From assembly GCA_038496445.1 (NCBI GenBank), contig JALMLS010000418.1, forward strand, positions 62,001 to 126,000: a stretch of 64,000 nucleotides of DNA. The letters are read 5' to 3'. The notes below the pieces were generated by a model. The model saw only the letters and a program-made list of their open reading frames with translations, did not search any database and was not told the DNA's origin. The stretch's first letter is position 1, and the number at the start of each line of letters is the position of its first letter. Below, in pieces: positions 39,078 to 47,846 of this stretch. The stretch is from Trichosphaerium sp. ATCC 40318 (Eukaryota; Protista; Tubulinea). Position numbers and translations under genes: made by a program.

Positions 39078-39298
39078 GTGCAATAGAGTTTGCGTGGAAA
39101 GGTGAAAGCGAGAAAGAGAATGTGTATTTGGTTGCGTGTAATTGTAAAGAAGCAAAAAGTAGTTTAATACATTGCAAACTGGTGCGTGAACTACGTCAGG
39201 GTACTTTGAAGCGAAGAAATTTAGCACTAAGCAACAAAAAGAAAGTCTCAGAATGTCAGCTAAGTCATACGCTAATTTTGTTTTGCCGCAAGCTAAAA

Positions 39299-39839
39299 AT
39301 GTCAAAGTTGAACCTACCTCTTGCTCGCGTTAAAAAAATTATTAAGAGTGACCAAGATGTTAAACTAATTGGTTCTGACGCATGTGTCACAATTGCAAAG
39401 GCGACGGTTAGAAATTTTGTAAAATGAAGTATCTTTCTAAATGAGCGTAGGAGATGCTCATTGCGTTCATGGTTAAAGAAGCATACGATAACACGAAGAA
39501 AGACGGAAGGAAAGTGCTTCAATACAAAGATGTTGGTATGTGTAGTTGTCAATTGTTACCGCCAAAACTTATATGCTATTAGCGAAGGCTGTACGTAATG
39601 TAGACGAGTTAGAGTTCCTTGATGATTTGATACCTGAGAAAATGTACGCAATAACGACGCCAAAGTCTAACTATGCTCAAAGGGTAGCGTCAAGCATACC
39701 AAAACCAAAGCCAAAACCAAAAACAAATTTAAACCCAAAACCAAAGCCAAAAGCGAAGCCAAAAGCGCCTCCAAAGTCACCAACTCCGCCACCAAACCAA
39801 CAGAGTATGCTAGACTTCGTTAACAAGAACAAGACATAA
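39299..39839 (+). CDS. H2A-like histone-fold protein of the NF-YC/DPB3(POLE4)/CHRAC1 family
   Basis: LPLARVKKIIKSDQDV...IAKATEMLI...RKVLQYKDVAKAV...LEFLDDLIP, two introns, Pro/Lys-rich tail. Confidence 0.88.
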
Positions 39840-40115: not shown

Positions 40116-43100
40116 ATGGTACGGGCGATGGCGTGTTAGTTAGAATAACTGAATAGGAAAAGGACACTTCACAAAAGATGTTGTGGGTACCAAGTGAAAC
40201 AGACGGTTTCGAACTTGCAAAGCTTGTTGGAACTACAGAAGCTCATGGAACTACAATGTATCAAGTTCTCGCACCAGGACAAAAAGTAAGGCTATTACAC
40301 AACGAAAATACTTCTACAGAGTGTTAAACAACACCTTGAGAATTCTTCTTCCTGTCACAAACATGTTTAACTCCTTACAGAAACAAATATCGGTTCAGAG
40401 GGACCTCTGTCATAACGCAAACCCCACACAGGATGGTGTTCCAGATAATACAACACTTATAGAATTTAACCCCGCAACTCTTCTCCAAAACTTACGTTGT
40501 CGCTATAAAAAGGATCAAATATACGTATGACGCTTGTTTTTACTTCTACTATTCACTTTTTCTCAGACTTACACCGCACACATTTTAACGGCAATTAATC
40601 CTTATAAACAACTTAATATCTATGATGAAAAGACTATGGAAAGGTAATTAAGAATTCTAAACGTAATTAAACGTCAGAAAAAGGCCAAAATCTATTTTTC
40701 CTAATTTTGCCAATTTTACGACAAAAACGCTAACTTTGGATTCAATAGATATGTTGCTAAATATATAGGCAATGAACCACCTCATGTTTATGGTATAGTA
40801 TACAACTCCTTCCTTTTATGTTGTCTTACATTTTTGGTGTAGCTATTGCAGATAAGGCGTATAGGTCTCTTAAATATCAAGGTGAAAATCAAGCTATTAT
40901 AATGAGGTATGAAGCGTGATTTTCGAATTTTTCAGAAAATTTTGTGACTGATTGATTTATTTTTTCAGTGGTGAGTCTGGTGCTGGTAAGACGGTGACGA
41001 GTAAGATTGCTTTGCGATTTTTGAGCTTTGCTTGTCGTCGAGATAAGGATAAAACTGAACAATTAGAACAAAGAATTTTAGCATCGAATCCTATTCTTGA
41101 AGTGAGTTTCATGCATAGAGGTTCTATTTTTAATTATTTTCTTTAGGCCCTTGGTAACGCCAAAACATTAAGGAATAATAATTCATCGCGCTTTGTAAGT
41201 TTTATCATAGTTCAGTGTCAGATGGAAGTAACAAAAAAAAATACTTAGGGTAAATTCATAGAAATTCATTTTGACGAAAACTATCATATTGAAGGTGGCT
41301 TGATTACAACGTGTATCCTACTTGCATAAATGACTTTGCAACTTTTCAATAACTCTACATTACCTCTTTAACTCTTGAAGACCTTTTAGAAAAGTCTAGA
41401 TTGGTACATCAACCAAAGAATGAGAGGTTCGTGTCATAACACAAGTCAACTATTTCTTTTTTTACTAACACGTGTAACTTCCAGAAATTTCCGTATTTTC
41501 TACCAGATGACTCTTGGTTGTACTGAAGCTCAACGTAAAGAATGGAATTTACACCAACCAGAGAAATTCCATTATTTGAACACTTCAGGTACAGACAGAA
41601 AAACCGTTTCAGATAAGTGACTTAAGCATTGTTTAAGGTTGCATTCGGATTGAAAACTATGATGATGCAGCCCACTTTAAAGAATTCTTGGTACTGTTAA
41701 AGTATTCTAATACAATCTTACATGTTATTTAGAATTCATTAAACGTCATGGGGTTCACGCAAGATGAGCAAAATATGCTATTACGCACATTAGCTGGTAT
41801 TTTGCATTTAGGAAATCTCGAGTTTTCTCCAAAAGAAAAAGGTCAAGGTTGTGTTGTTAAGAATATGGAAGGTATGTAAATATCATAGTATGTGTTTTTG
41901 TAGCATTTGGTGCTCATATAAGGCTTAGAAGTTAAATACGCTGCTGGGTTATTTAAGTTAGATGAGAATGTCTTTGTGACTAGTTTACTTCATCGTACTG
42001 TGTCTGTAAAGGAGCAAGGTAATGTTAGTAATATTCAAGTACCATTAAAGCTTCAAGAAGTACGTGTTTGTTTGACTTTTTCTTTATTAAAAGTTGGTCG
42101 TTTTGATGGTTTTGTTATTGATTTTTTGCTTTCTTCTAGGCCGAGTATGCACGTGATACGCTTGCTAAGACGATTTATTTACAACTTTTTGAATGGGTTG
42201 TTAAGCGTATTAATGATAGCTTGAGAGATAAGAAAAAATATGATAGTGATAGTGAAGATGAGAGATTTATTGGGATTCTTGATATTTTCGGATTTGAGAG
42301 TTTTGAGGTTAATTCGTTTGAGCAGTTGTGTATTAACCTAACAAATGAACATTTACAAAATTACTATGATGAACAAATATTAAATCAAGAGCAAGAGATT
42401 TATAAACGTGAGGGTATACAGTGGACAGATATTAAATTCAAAGACAACTCTTTTTGTATAAAACTGCTTGATGAGGTACATGATCATTTGTTCTCTTCTT
42501 CGTATTAGTTTGTGATTGACACATGTTTTTTAGAAGCATCATGGTATATTATCTATACTAGATGAAGAATGTCGTATGCCTACCCATAGTAATGGTCAGT
42601 TCCTAAGGAAGGTTTATAGGAAGCACCTCAGAAATCCGTACGTAACAAAACCATTTTTCAGTTTGATTTTGTTTTGACTTCTGTCTTAGGTACCTTTCTA
42701 AGCCCGCTGTATCAGCCGCAAAAGGAGGTAGTGGTAAAGCGAGAGAAAAGACAACAGCAAGAACTGATGAAGAGGCGTTTTGTGTTAAGCATTTCGCTGG
42801 AAAGGTACTTGGTGTTTCTTTTCTAATTTCTTCGTTAGTGAGCTAATAAGTTTTGTAGGTTACCTATGATGTAACAACAGGATTCATTACAAAGAATAAT
42901 GATATGATACACCCAGCTTTAGAAGGTCTCATGAGTGGTAGTAAAGATCCAATCTTGGCTAATATATTTGCTGTAACCAAAGAGCGAAGTACTCGGTTTA
43001 ATACAATTAGTGCAACGTTCTTGGCTCAACTTCACAAACTTATGGCGAGGTATATACCTCTAATATATTTCGTATACACTTACATATATTACTTTAGGCT

Positions 43101-46100
43101 TCGTGGATGTTCTGCACACTTTGTGAGATGTATCAAACCTAATAGTATTCAGAAACCAGCTGTCTTTGACGGTAAATCAATTTTTTTTCAACTCAAGTGT
43201 TCTGGACTATTGGAAACATTACAGCTCATGACTCTTGGTACTTATATTTATCGTATGCACATAATCTTATGCTTTTTTTAGGTTACCCTACACGCTGCTC
43301 GTATAAGTATTTGTATGATAGGTATCATGATATCATGCCACCTTTGCTTAAAAATATGGATCCTTCGTCGTTCAGTGAGGCGCTTCTTATGGCTCTTGAA
43401 GTACCTAAATCTTCGTATACACGTGGTGTATCGAAGCTGTTTTTTAAGGCTGGTCAGGTACGTTAATATCACATAATTTTAAAACGGACTTGTACTTGTA
43501 TTATTTATCACGTGAATCTTTTTTTATGCTAATTACATTCCTATAGATGTCGTTCATAGAGAAGCTAAAAGAAGAGGGTAAAGCTATTGCGCCTGAACTT
43601 GTTCAGCGTGTTAAAAGCTGGATACTTATGAAGAAATTTCGTCGTGCAGTTACTACAATTATCGCTGTTTTCCGCTGTACGACCTTTTCTCTTTCTTGTA
43701 GCCATCCATCTCTAATGGTTTTACTTATAGTCACACGCGTTCTAAGATGTCTTGAATCACTTCAACGCTTTAGAAAAACAGTGAGAGTTTTGTGTATAGT
43801 TAACAAGACTATGATTAAATTAGCTCGTAAAATACGTAAAAGAGTTGCTGCTACAAAGATACAGAGCTGTAAGTGAACAAATTGTTATTTATTTTTATCG
43901 TTAAGCTTACCTCTGTGATAGTGTGGAGAATGTATTCGCGTCGTAGAACATATCGAAAGATTAGGGCGAATGTAATTAAATTACAGTCTTGGATACGTTG
44001 TACTCACACGTGGCAAGTTGTAGCTCCTGTGATTGAACAGCAACGTGAAGGTAACTTTGTTTTCTTTTTTTAGATGATATTGTACTGAAAATTCGCTTAT
44101 TTCAACATAGAACTCCGGAAGAAGATTGAAGCTGAAGAAAAGAGACGTAAAGAAGCATTGGCATTAAAAAGACAAGAAGAGAAGAAGCGAGCTCTTCAAA
44201 AACTTGAAGATATGCAACGAAAGAGTAAGCCAGTTTCTTGAACCTCACGTGTTTCTTTTTGTTTACTTTGACTATAGGTCGAGAAGCTAAAGCAGCTAAG
44301 TTTAAAGAAGCCGAAGAAAAGCGTCTCAGGGAAGAAGCTTTGAGAGAGAAACTAGTACTTGAAGAAAAAGAAAAGGAGAAAAAAATAAAAGAACAAAAAG
44401 AGCTTGAGGAAAAACGGAAAAAAGAAGAAGAGGAACAACGTCTTCGTGAAGAACAAAAAAAGCGTGATGAGCAAGATAGGATAGCTAAAGAGGCTGAAGA
44501 GAAGCGAAGAAAAGCTGAAGAAGCCCATTTGGCTGCTCTCAAAGCGCTTGAAGATGAAAAACAGGCACAGATCATTGAAGCTAAACAGAAACGCGATGAG
44601 GCTGCAAAAGAAGCCAAAGAGCAACAAGCGTACACTCACATATGCTCAGAACAATAACTGACACTTTTCTAGGCTTAAAGCGCAGTTAGAAGCTCAATTA
44701 GAAGCTCAACGTGTTGAGCAAGAGAAAAAGAATACTGTGCTTGCTAAAAAAGCAGAAGAACTTGCTGTATTGAAAGCAGAGCACGATACCCGTGTTAATG
44801 AACTTCATAAGATTACAAAAGAGCAATCTGAGCGTTTGGCTCAACTAGGAGAATGGGAGGAAACGTTGGGTACGACAAGAAACAGCCAGAGTTAGGACTA
44901 TCGAACAAAAATGAAGAGTTTGTCTTCATATTCTTTCGAGTTTGTTTGTCATGTACTGATATGGTTTTTTGTAGAAAAGGAACGTAAGAAACGTGAAGAA
45001 GAACAAGAGAAATTGAAATCCAAAGACAAAGAATTGAAAGAGTTATTGGAGAGGCATAAGGCAGATAGCGCAGAACTTGAACGTCGTCAACAAAATATGA
45101 CAAAAGCTCATTTAGAAAAGGAGCAGGTACCACTTTTTTCTTGTTTGTTTTTTTTAAAAGAGAGACGATATTTTATTGATCCGTTGGTGCTTATAGGAGT
45201 TGAATTTACTGCGTAATGAGCTTGAACTAGCTAAAAGACAAGTTGAAGATCGTAAAAACCTGGAAAAGGAGAGACAAGAATTACTTTCTGGTGAATTAAA
45301 GAAGCAACAAGATAGTTTAGGTAAACCACTTTTCCCTTTAAAAAAAAACTGGCCAATGTCAATGTTGCTCTTCTTGTTCCATGTTTTATCTTCTATCTAT
45401 CTACTCCTACCTTATTCTTCTTTCTTCTTGTTGTTCTTATCGTGAACTGTTAGCTTCTCTTAAGGATGGTATTACGAGGCGTGAAAGTAATGTTTCGTTA
45501 ATGGTTCAGGAAGCACAAAAAAGAGAGATGGAATTAGCTTTAAAATCAAAAGAACTAGAGTTTGAGATAAAGCAAAAAGAGGAAAATAAGAGGATGGAGC
45601 TTGAACGCTTAGAGCAGTCTCTCAAGGATAGTATGTCCAAAGTAGAGGAAGATAAAGCCAAGCAAGAGGAAATAGCAGCTTCTACAGCCGAAAAACTGAA
45701 CGAAAAACAGTCTTCTTTAGAAGAACGTGAAGCTGCCCTTAAGGCTCGTGAAGAGGCTGTTACTCTTAGAGAAGATGAAGTAGCTATATTTCAGACTAAA
45801 CTGGAGAAGAAAGAGCAAGAGTTAGACTTTAAAGAAGTCCGCTTGAATGAAGATACAGAAAGCTTTAACAGCAAGAAAGCAAAGTTTAAAGTGAAGAAAC
45901 AAGCCTTTAATGAGGCTAGTGCTACTTTTACACAGAAACAAGCTGATGTTATCATCAATGAAGCACGTGTTAAAGAAGAATTACGTATATTACAAGAAGC
46001 AAAGATGAAGTTCAAAGAAAAGAAGAAAAAGTTCGCTGAAGCTCAACCAAGTGTTGCGCAAGGCGTTGATCAAGACCATATTGCTAAGCTTGTTGAGGTA

Positions 46101-47110
46101 CCCCTATTTCATAAATACACTAATTTTACTACAACACAACAATGCTAAATATAACTAGGCATCTACGTCACGTGTTTTAGAAAGACAGTTATCAGATTTG
46201 AAGCAAATGTTGGTTACAAAAGACCCAGAGAGTGATACAACTCTGACACCTCGTAAGAATAAGGGTGGTGTTCCTTATACGCCTAGAGATATTCATGGAA
46301 GGCGTAAGTATTATGTAGATACAATGACAAACTCACTGTTTGTTTTAGTTGAGTATAAAGTAACTAACTTGAGAAACGCTTTGGGCAGTATTGAAGGCGA
46401 ACTACCGGCTTTGACTAACCGTAATTTTCAACAACAAAAGGAGATTGCTGAGCTCAAACGTATTATATGTAAACATGAGGATGAAGTTAAACGTTTACGC
46501 AGTATGTTAGTAACTAGCTTTGATAAACCTGAGGAAACGTTATCTGTACGAAGAGCTTAGAAAACAAGTATGATATTTATTTTTATTCGTAGATTGTTGG
46601 CGACGACTCTGTCGCTCATCCTGAGTGGCCTAATAAGGAAGAGCGTGAGCGTAAGCACTTACAATTACACAATGATTTTATGACATCGGAGGTACTTTGT
46701 TTGTGTGGGGCTCAAATGTTGAGACTTGTTTTTAGGTTGAGCGTCTTCAAAAAGATTTAGAAGCTAAAGACGACCTCATCAATGTTATGAGAAATGAGAA
46801 TTCTAGACTTAAAGAGTTTGCAAAGACAACTTCAGTAGGCGGAGAACCTCAAAGTTTGGTTGTAACACAGTTCCACGATCTAAAGAGCAGGTAAAACGAA
46901 AGACAACATTGCATCTCATTTTTTTCTGACAACTCTTTTTTTAGATACTTTGAAACGATTGCTCTCTTTATTAAGCTGCAAGGTTCTATGCAAGGTAAAT
47001 CACATATCGGAAATGCAGATGTGCATAAGTTAAAGGAGAAGGCGTTACGCCTTGGTATACCGTATGACCAGTGGCCAAACTGGATCTTGGATGAACTTCA
47101 AGAAACTTGA
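40116..47110 (+). CDS. Unconventional myosin heavy chain, myosin VI-like (motor, IQ, ER/K helix, coiled coil)
   Basis: GESGAGKT, NNNSSRFG, YLLEKSR, LDIFGFE, FVRCIKPN; IQ motifs; E/K/R-rich tail. First coding exon is probably ATG only (40116-40118). Stop TGA at 47108-47110. Confidence 0.95.
41313..41380 (+). other. U12-type (minor spliceosome) intron in the myosin gene
   Basis: Donor GTATCCTA, branch CTCTTTAAC, then 8 nt ending in AG. Removal restores Y-LLEKSR. Confidence 0.85.
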
Positions 47111-47363
47111 AGCTTGTTGGCTTCTGTAGTAGCTCTAGACCAAATTTTTTTTATGCGTTTTGAATGCATAGTGTAGTTTTGTAAATAAGTAATAATGTTA
47201 TGGTTTAAGAGATGAAATACAAGCACACCTAAAGTAAAGACAGTTTCGTCCAATTTAGTAATTCTGAACATGTCACTTAATCATTTTTTGGATTAAGTAC
47301 CTCGTGAACATCACTTTGAACATCACTTCTACAAAGTTACAACAATAACGTAAAATAGTCAAC

Positions 47364-47823
<460 letters not shown>

Positions 47824-47846
47824 TTCCCGCAACCCCTAGTTCCCTT

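Follow-up and report, generated by a model that had tools for sequence, protein, structure and literature searches.

The 64,000-nucleotide stretch of DNA from Trichosphaerium sp. ATCC 40318 analysed here (contig JALMLS010000418.1, positions 62,001 to 126,000; hereafter the window, in which all positions below are counted) has a base composition of about 37% G+C and is eukaryotic DNA. At 40178-47110 on the forward strand it carries a myosin heavy-chain gene of 33 exons, with 1640 codons and a stop. The segment that follows the converter of this myosin is a homologue of insert 2, the reverse gear of animal myosin VI, the converter itself is closest to that of myosin VI, and insert 1 of the animal protein is absent. 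With modest confidence, we read the protein as a VI-like myosin that has kept the reverse gear and is therefore a candidate minus-end-directed motor; it is probably a dimer, its lever would be longer, and it would lack insert-1 gating.

The converter and the segment that follows it

Searches of PDB, Pfam, Atlas and the representative sequences used single exons, or proteins returned by such searches, as queries, and the joined model of 1640 amino acids was compared locally (BLAST, HMMER, MAFFT, IQ-TREE) with the fetched proteins. Compared with PDB by phmmer, the converter exon reached E 5e-7 to 3e-6 with no class but myosin VI. That alignment has no gaps, and 23 of its 57 residues (40%) are identical; the next class was Dictyostelium myosin II at E 2e-3, four orders of magnitude weaker. 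The resemblance to the myosin VI converter was first noticed in the original prediction, made by reading the DNA letters before any database was searched, and with myosin VI as the best PDB class at E 5e-7 it is above chance.

Exon 20, which continues the protein after the converter, is too short for a single-sequence search, and a profile was therefore used, built from the 50 post-converter residues of 23 myosin VI sequences that bear the class VI cargo-binding domain (CBD). The Trichosphaerium myosin scored 20.5 bits with this insert-2 profile (E 1.9e-8 for one sequence). The protist VI-like myosins scored 12-36 bits, and the 30 control myosins of other classes (V, XI, II and others) reached 5 bits at most. 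Profile positions 17-45 fell on residues 17-45 after the Trichosphaerium converter, and the spacing between converter and helix is therefore the same as in animal myosin VI. The claim that insert 2 begins in this segment was thus borne out, the two being homologous and in register.

The segment has two parts. The proximal one, residues 740-755, is predicted to break the helix at Gly750 and Pro755. In the neck alignment, the relatives carry Gly, Ser or Asn plus Pro at this place, and classes V and XI have an unbroken helical sequence there that runs into the first IQ motif (IQ1). The distal part, residues 756-790, would form a helix and is a putative calmodulin or light-chain site; in this region (residues 736-800) the protist family profile gave 54.8 bits versus 10.8 bits with the profile of non-VI necks. 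In the numbering of PDB 8W41, by which Trichosphaerium residue n is myosin VI residue n+23, Trp764 equals Trp787 of myosin VI, and the myosin VI bend site at 784/785 (PMC5762158) maps to Val761/Lys762.

Membership in class V or XI was also considered for the protein and was rejected: there is no DIL domain, the helix is broken by Gly and Pro, and the non-VI neck profile reaches only the 10.8 bits given above on residues 736-800.

Structure model of the closest relative

The geometry of the lever was approached through an AlphaFold2 model of residues 650-864 (converter and neck) of the Diphylleia protein P0159, the closest relative, which is 43.7% identical to the Trichosphaerium myosin over the converter and neck (about 210 residues) and has Pro at the same place. 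The input alignment consisted of protist sequences only. The model has a mean predicted local distance difference test score (pLDDT) of 88 and consists of the converter, a six-residue helix, a five-residue break at the place that corresponds to the Gly/Pro site and then one long helix. In Foldseek its top matches were all MD-insert2 structures of myosin VI (125 columns, root-mean-square deviation (rmsd) 4.2-4.7 Å), and the comparison with myosin V gave about 14 Å over about 113 columns. VIA-align superposed residues 21-132 of the model on 704-815 of 2vas_A with Z 12.6 and rmsd 3.4 Å, so that the whole of insert 2 was covered; myosins V and II superposed on the model only to residues 90-94.

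A non-VI neck, P0087, built in the same way as a control, gave an unbroken helix from the converter onward and followed the levers of myosins II, V and I; none of its top 50 matches was a myosin VI. The bend expected from the original prediction was therefore found in the model of the relative, which is bent as myosin VI is, whereas that of the control is straight; the calmodulin-bound model of the protein itself that had been proposed is replaced here by a proxy modelled without calmodulin. Judged by this proxy, the lever of the Trichosphaerium myosin would likewise be bent along the myosin VI path.

Relatives and phylogeny

When exon 14 was compared with 1.84 billion representatives, no near-identical or orthologous protein came up, the best identity being 62%, to a fragment; the organism's own protein therefore seems to lie outside the representative set. 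The best match of this exon, P0001 (1355 amino acids), has three separate Myosin_head stretches, and it is perhaps a protein with tandem motors, perhaps a fused gene call.

The best full-length matches of the spliced model came from Rigifila, Diphylleia, Rhodelphis and Cyanophora, and these relatives have RUN, CAP-Gly or PX tails or no known tail domain. Identity over the motor is 44-47% to the protist VI-like group, 44.6% to Capsaspora MYO6, about 40% to animal class VI and 32-40% to other classes. The converter and neck together (220 residues) fit without gaps to a profile of 52 protist VI-like sequences, at 232 bits versus 106 bits with the profile of 50 non-VI necks. With the Rigifila protein as query, the named matches that came after the protist relatives were mostly unconventional myosin-VI, and class XI had similar scores. 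Matches to the converter and neck of the Diphylleia protein fell into three tiers, the first with RUN-tail myosins including Emiliania EMIHUDRAFT_448407, the second with the PH-tail myosins from Fonticula and Stygamoeba together with a single myosin VI that bears the CBD, and the third, far below, with class V.

PH-tail VI-like myosins with an insert-2-like segment were also seen in Amoebozoa, namely in Stygamoeba (P0181), Vermistella (P0190), Cavostelium (P0187) and Soliformovum (P0184), and they group with Capsaspora 'MYO6', Salpingoeca and Fonticula. In the 2014 survey, no class VI was reported for amoebozoans or fungi-side lineages (PMC3942036).

Trees were computed with IQ-TREE under LG+C20 with posterior mean site frequencies (PMSF) and a quick search, one from the motor core minus the converter columns (106 rows) and one from the full motor (77 rows), the latter leaving out redundant animal VI sequences and eight very long branches. 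Branch support is given by the Shimodaira-Hasegawa-like approximate likelihood ratio test (SH-aLRT). The Trichosphaerium myosin stands in a 59-row group of VI-like and animal class VI myosins in the core tree (SH-aLRT 90) and in a 43-row clade, again of VI-like and animal class VI myosins, in the full-motor tree (SH-aLRT 99). CBD-bearing class VI forms a clade of its own (SH-aLRT 100), and the Trichosphaerium myosin lies outside it.

In the full-motor tree, four proteins from metagenome and Logan data (P0123, P0076, P0135 and P0111) form a small clade that is the sister group of class VI sensu lato, with SH-aLRT 99. They score 5-11 bits with the animal insert-2 profile and may be a further VI-like group.

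Several observations weigh against a class VI-like, reversed lever. By the approximately unbiased (AU) test, placement of the Trichosphaerium myosin among other classes is not rejected for the core tree (p 0.65), the constrained tree being slightly likelier, and for the full motor it is 18.9 log-likelihood units worse and again not rejected (p 0.119). The branch that leads to the protein is long, at about 1 change per site, and joins its clade at the base without resolution. Motor exons 12, 14 and 17 show no preference for class VI in PDB, and exon 20 alone has no PDB match at E up to 10. Phe770 takes the place of the conserved Trp793 of myosin VI, and the insert-2-like helix is also in register with IQ1 of classes V and XI, so that it could be a degenerate first IQ. 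The structure test concerns a model of a relative, without calmodulin, and AlphaFold has been trained on myosin VI structures; the splice model on which the protein rests is a prediction.

Taken at their strongest, such observations would describe an orphan plus-end-directed myosin, in which the segment after the converter amounts to a degenerate first IQ, the lever is straight, and the likeness of the segment to insert 2 stems from a common origin of insert 2 and IQ1 and not from a shared reverse gear. We regard this as a serious but clearly less probable alternative. The register is that of IQ1 in frog myosin Vc and plant myosin XI, with VQ at the place of IQ and KKF in common; the AU tests leave a placement among other classes unrejected, and most motor exons have no class VI preference. 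A degenerate IQ is, however, hard to match with a score of 20.5 bits where 30 class V, XI, II and other myosins give 5 or less, and Gly750 and Pro755 break a helix that is continuous in plus-end myosins. Moreover, the relative with the same Pro is modelled as broken and on the myosin VI path, unlike the straight control, and the converter itself is VI-like.

Motor phylogeny had been named in the original prediction as a check on class VI affinity. Its outcome is mixed: the clade of class VI and VI-like myosins is preferred in the trees, and the AU tests do not reject other placements. The clade support and the AU results taken together thus favour a position in class VI sensu lato without proving it, and the support from the trees is moderate.

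Motor domain and the site of insert 1

The P-loop, switch I, switch II and the FVRCIKPN motif are intact, and judged by these ATPase motifs the motor is predicted to be catalytically competent. The N-terminal MLWVPSETDGF can be aligned with the beginning of animal myosin VI, xVWxPxxxxGF, as had been proposed, and also with that of other classes; the resemblance is therefore real but not specific for class VI. At the TEDS site the residue is Ser375 and therefore phosphorylatable, which suggests that phosphorylation of the heavy chain regulates this myosin, as it does those of classes I and VI. The aligned animal class VI rows have Thr at this site, most other classes have Asp, Glu or Gly, and the VI-like relatives are mixed (Ser/Thr or Asp/Glu).

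In animal myosin VI, insert 1 tunes nucleotide gating. It comprises residues 278-303 of MYO6 and lies near the nucleotide pocket (PMC5762158). At the aligned site of the Trichosphaerium myosin, across the junction of exons 10 and 11, nothing is inserted, which agrees with the absence noted originally. Insert 1 is likewise absent from the alignment rows of all protist VI-like myosins and Capsaspora MYO6, and an insert of 26-27 residues is seen at the site in some animal VI rows. Some CBD-bearing myosin VI entries also lack it (P0254 from a fish, P0196 from Hydra, P0240 from Pomacea, P0234 and P0178), and the myosin VI entries P0265, P0205 and P0194 have it in the same alignment. Isoforms, errors in gene models or a later origin of the insert within animals could account for this pattern.

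Neck and tail

Between the insert-2 homologue and the first canonical IQ motif lies a helical spacer, residues 791-820. Extra residues had been predicted at this place; they are there, though they number about 30 and not about 20. The spacer is common to the RUN-type and PH-type protist relatives, animal myosin VI is without it, and it is possibly one more light-chain site. The two IQ motifs that follow match the Pfam IQ family weakly and align with the IQ motifs of the relatives.

Beyond the neck, residues 870-1030 contain 26% Glu and 34% Lys plus Arg (60% together) and neither Pro nor Gly. No Pfam family matches this ER/K-rich segment, and the relatives also bear ER/K stretches there; its composition makes a single alpha-helix likely. 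The heptad-rich tail after it is a probable dimerising coiled coil of about 550 residues. Pfam recognises no domain on any tail exon (no RUN, PH, DIL, PF21521 or PF16521), a profile of the RUN-type tails of the relatives gave 1.1 bits and thus no match, and exon 33, which encodes the C-terminal segment, had no matches in Pfam, Atlas or PDB. With a long predicted coiled coil, an uncharacterised end piece and, by Pfam, neither a RUN, a PH nor a CBD domain, the tail is unusual.

Such a tail bears on what the motor would do in the cell. Animal myosin VI is both a transporter and an anchor. A protein with reverse-gear geometry could, as a monomer or a dimer, hold loads as a slow anchor or tether, as has been proposed for some roles of the animal protein, rather than act as a transporter, in which case its direction would be of little cellular weight. 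The double service of the animal protein and the lack of a recognisable cargo domain agree with an anchor, and without insert 1 the gating between heads may weaken and lower processivity. The long coiled coil and the long lever are, on the other hand, what is expected of a stepping dimer, and we consider the anchor improbable.

Gene model and neighbouring genes

The gene model was assembled from the three-frame translation and splice sites, and its basis is splice signals, the open frame and homology. All 32 introns are GT-AG and 42-133 bp long, and the sole stop is the terminal one. Every peptide that had been quoted is present on the forward strand, including two that cross splice junctions. 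The interval 43281-44050, described originally as one segment, is not a single reading frame but four exons, E19-E22, with GT-AG introns of 89, 54 and 53 bp between them. Exons 18-23 align almost without gaps to the relatives, and their splice junctions are thereby fixed. The features of the gene are listed in Table 1.

Table 1. Features of the Trichosphaerium myosin heavy-chain gene, with positions in the window
Feature	Position	Strand	Basis or remark
Exon 1, N-terminal SH3-like start MLWVPSETDGF	40178-40285 (MLWVPSETDGF 40178-40210)	+	weak Pfam Myosin_N, E 0.098
Motor core, exons 2-18, residues ~37-680	40381-43237	+	Pfam Myosin_head on exons
P-loop GESGAGKT	40970-40993	+	intact
Switch I NSSRFGK, spliced	41180-41254	+	intact
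Site of insert 1, FHYLNTSG/CIRIENYDD across the E10/E11 junction	41567-41666	+	alignment, no insertion
TEDS site Ser375	42027-42029	+	16 residues before DTLAK (alignment)
Switch II DIFGFE	42281-42298	+	intact
E19	43282-43457	+	exon in interval 43281-44050
Converter, exon 19, residues 681-739	43282-43457	+	phmmer against PDB
E20	43547-43676	+	exon in interval 43281-44050
Proximal insert-2-like part, residues 740-755, with Gly750 and Pro755; predicted helix break	43547-43594	+	aligns with myosin VI 763-778
Distal insert-2-like helix, residues 756-790, spliced E20/E21	43595-43753	+	insert-2 and protist family profiles
E21	43731-43868	+	exon in interval 43281-44050
Spacer of ~30 residues, 791-820, helical	43754-43843	+	neck alignment; helical in AlphaFold2 model of relative
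Two IQ motifs, residues 821-843 and 844-864, spliced E21/E22	43844-44028	+	IQSLWRMYSRR, LQSWIRCTHTW
E22	43922-44050	+	exon in interval 43281-44050
ER/K-rich segment, residues ~872-1026	44050-44629	+	composition
Long heptad-rich tail, residues ~1027-1585, break near 1420-1447	44673-46890	+	composition
Exon 33, C-terminal 54-residue non-coiled segment	46945-47110	+	putative cargo end

A faulty model would undo the description of the protein as a whole. If it were partly wrong, or if the gene were unexpressed, as a pseudogene or as two neighbouring genes joined into one, the protein described here would not exist. A look for RNA runs over this stretch listed none, and tail exons 24-33 have no homologue by which they could be checked. 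We nevertheless hold this to be very improbable: an unbroken series of 32 GT-AG introns (42-133 bp), a frame free of internal stops and catalytic motifs that are intact speak against it, as do the almost gapless alignment of exons 1-23 to the relatives and the gaps between exons, which are all too small for a promoter. The pseudogene reading was rejected on the intact frame and motifs.

The gene is flanked by two others on the forward strand. Upstream, at 39122-39839, lies a gene with a histone-fold-like start, LPLARVKKIIKSDQDV, and a tail of Pro-Lys repeats (PKPKPKPK...), which looks like a small histone-fold protein of the NC2-alpha/DPB3 type. Directly downstream is a histone H3 gene with one intron at 47359-47826. 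Its tail presumably differs from that of canonical H3, with His at the usual place of Ser28, after Lys27, and the gene may encode an H3 variant.

Discussion

The mechanism that we propose starts from a little-studied family that would be class VI sensu lato, or VI-like, and is found across many protist lineages. The insert-2 homologue of the Trichosphaerium protein would consist of a short helix-breaking linker with Gly750 and Pro755 and of an amphipathic helix, residues 756-790, which is spaced from the converter just as its animal counterpart is. If it acts as in myosin VI, the post-converter segment would turn the lever arm back over the converter, and the power stroke of the reversed lever would be directed toward the minus (pointed) end of actin. 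The lever would be longer than the animal one, with the insert helix, the 30-residue spacer and two IQ motifs, which would presumably bind light chains, and then the ER/K single helix. In place of the animal cargo-binding domain there would be the coiled coil of about 550 residues, through which the heavy chains could dimerise, and the small C-terminal piece.

The insert-2 segment is conserved across distant protists in sequence and spacing and, as far as the models indicate, in geometry, and insert 1 and the animal tail appear to be later additions. A fragment made of motor and neck would therefore be a simple test of two things, the age of backward movement on actin and the workings of a motor that has a longer lever and no insert-1 gating. 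Tentatively, and with less confidence than we have in the reversed lever itself, we hypothesize that the reverse gear is ancestral in an old pan-eukaryotic family (Amorphea, CRuMs, Archaeplastida and haptophytes) and not an invention of animals or holozoans, and that the amoeba protein is a working dimeric minus-end transporter with a longer lever for about four light chains and no insert-1 gating. If this is true, it would support the existence of a minus-end-directed actin motor as early as about the last eukaryotic common ancestor, and the dispute between the classifications of 2014 and 2017 would be settled for a deep class VI.

That dispute concerns the membership of the protist "VI-like" myosins in class VI. 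Sebé-Pedrós et al. (2014; PMC3942036) placed the RUN-tail myosins of Emiliania and Thecamonas in class VI, with class VI or VI-like myosins known from holozoans, an apusozoan and Emiliania and with the VI-like genes of alveolates assigned to class XXIII. Kollmar and Mühlhausen (PMC5583752) object and reject class VI for the RUN-tail myosins, which miss the loops and tail domains typical of class 6. The idea of a minus-end candidate from outside the animals is less new than the original prediction implied: class VI or VI-like myosins of other organisms were reported in PMC3942036, and insert-2-like segments with predicted minus-end geometry in PMC13448217. What stands of that suggestion is the insert-2 homologue, the missing insert 1 and the non-animal host. 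A limited literature search gave no study that dealt with insert 2 in the RUN-tail, CRuMs or amoebozoan members. The Trichosphaerium gene is a new member of an already reported group of VI-like myosins.

Among known systems, the argument made here has its nearest precedent in the apicomplexan myosins PfMyoJ and PfMyoK, which have an insert-2-like insertion after the converter and for which the lever geometry in AlphaFold models predicts minus-end direction (PMC13448217). They share with the Trichosphaerium myosin a non-animal host, an insert-2-like segment and an AlphaFold-based case for direction, a likeness that is drawn from their description and not from sequence. The resemblance to animal class VI (MYO6, Jaguar 95F; PDB 2BKI, 2VAS and 8W41) lies in the VI-type converter, ungapped and 40% identical, the insert-2 homologue at equal distance from it, the SH3-like start, the phosphorylatable TEDS residue and the ER/K helix predicted after the neck. 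Unlike the animal proteins, the Trichosphaerium myosin is without insert 1, has a neck extended by about 30 residues and two IQ motifs where the animal neck has one, carries Phe for Trp793 and a long coiled-coil tail, and has its motor outside the well-supported CBD-bearing clade; by Pfam, it has neither the three-helix lever extension (PF21521) nor the cargo-binding domain (PF16521) of animal class VI.

The protist VI-like myosins are nearer. The PH-tail group (Capsaspora, Salpingoeca, Fonticula H696_04004, Stygamoeba, Vermistella, Cavostelium and Soliformovum) belongs to the same large clade and shares the insert-2-like segment, the spacer and the absence of insert 1, but its neck passes into the ER/K helix without a canonical IQ motif and the protein ends in a PH domain, whereas the Trichosphaerium myosin has two IQ motifs and no PH domain. 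From the RUN-tail myosins of Emiliania, Thecamonas, Rigifila, Diphylleia, Rhodelphis and Cyanophora it differs by its long branch, the lack of a RUN domain and a much longer coiled coil that ends in the 54-residue piece. These are nevertheless its closest relatives overall, with 44-47% motor identity, no insert 1 and a neck plan that is the same without gaps: converter, insert-2-like segment, spacer of about 30 residues and two IQ motifs.

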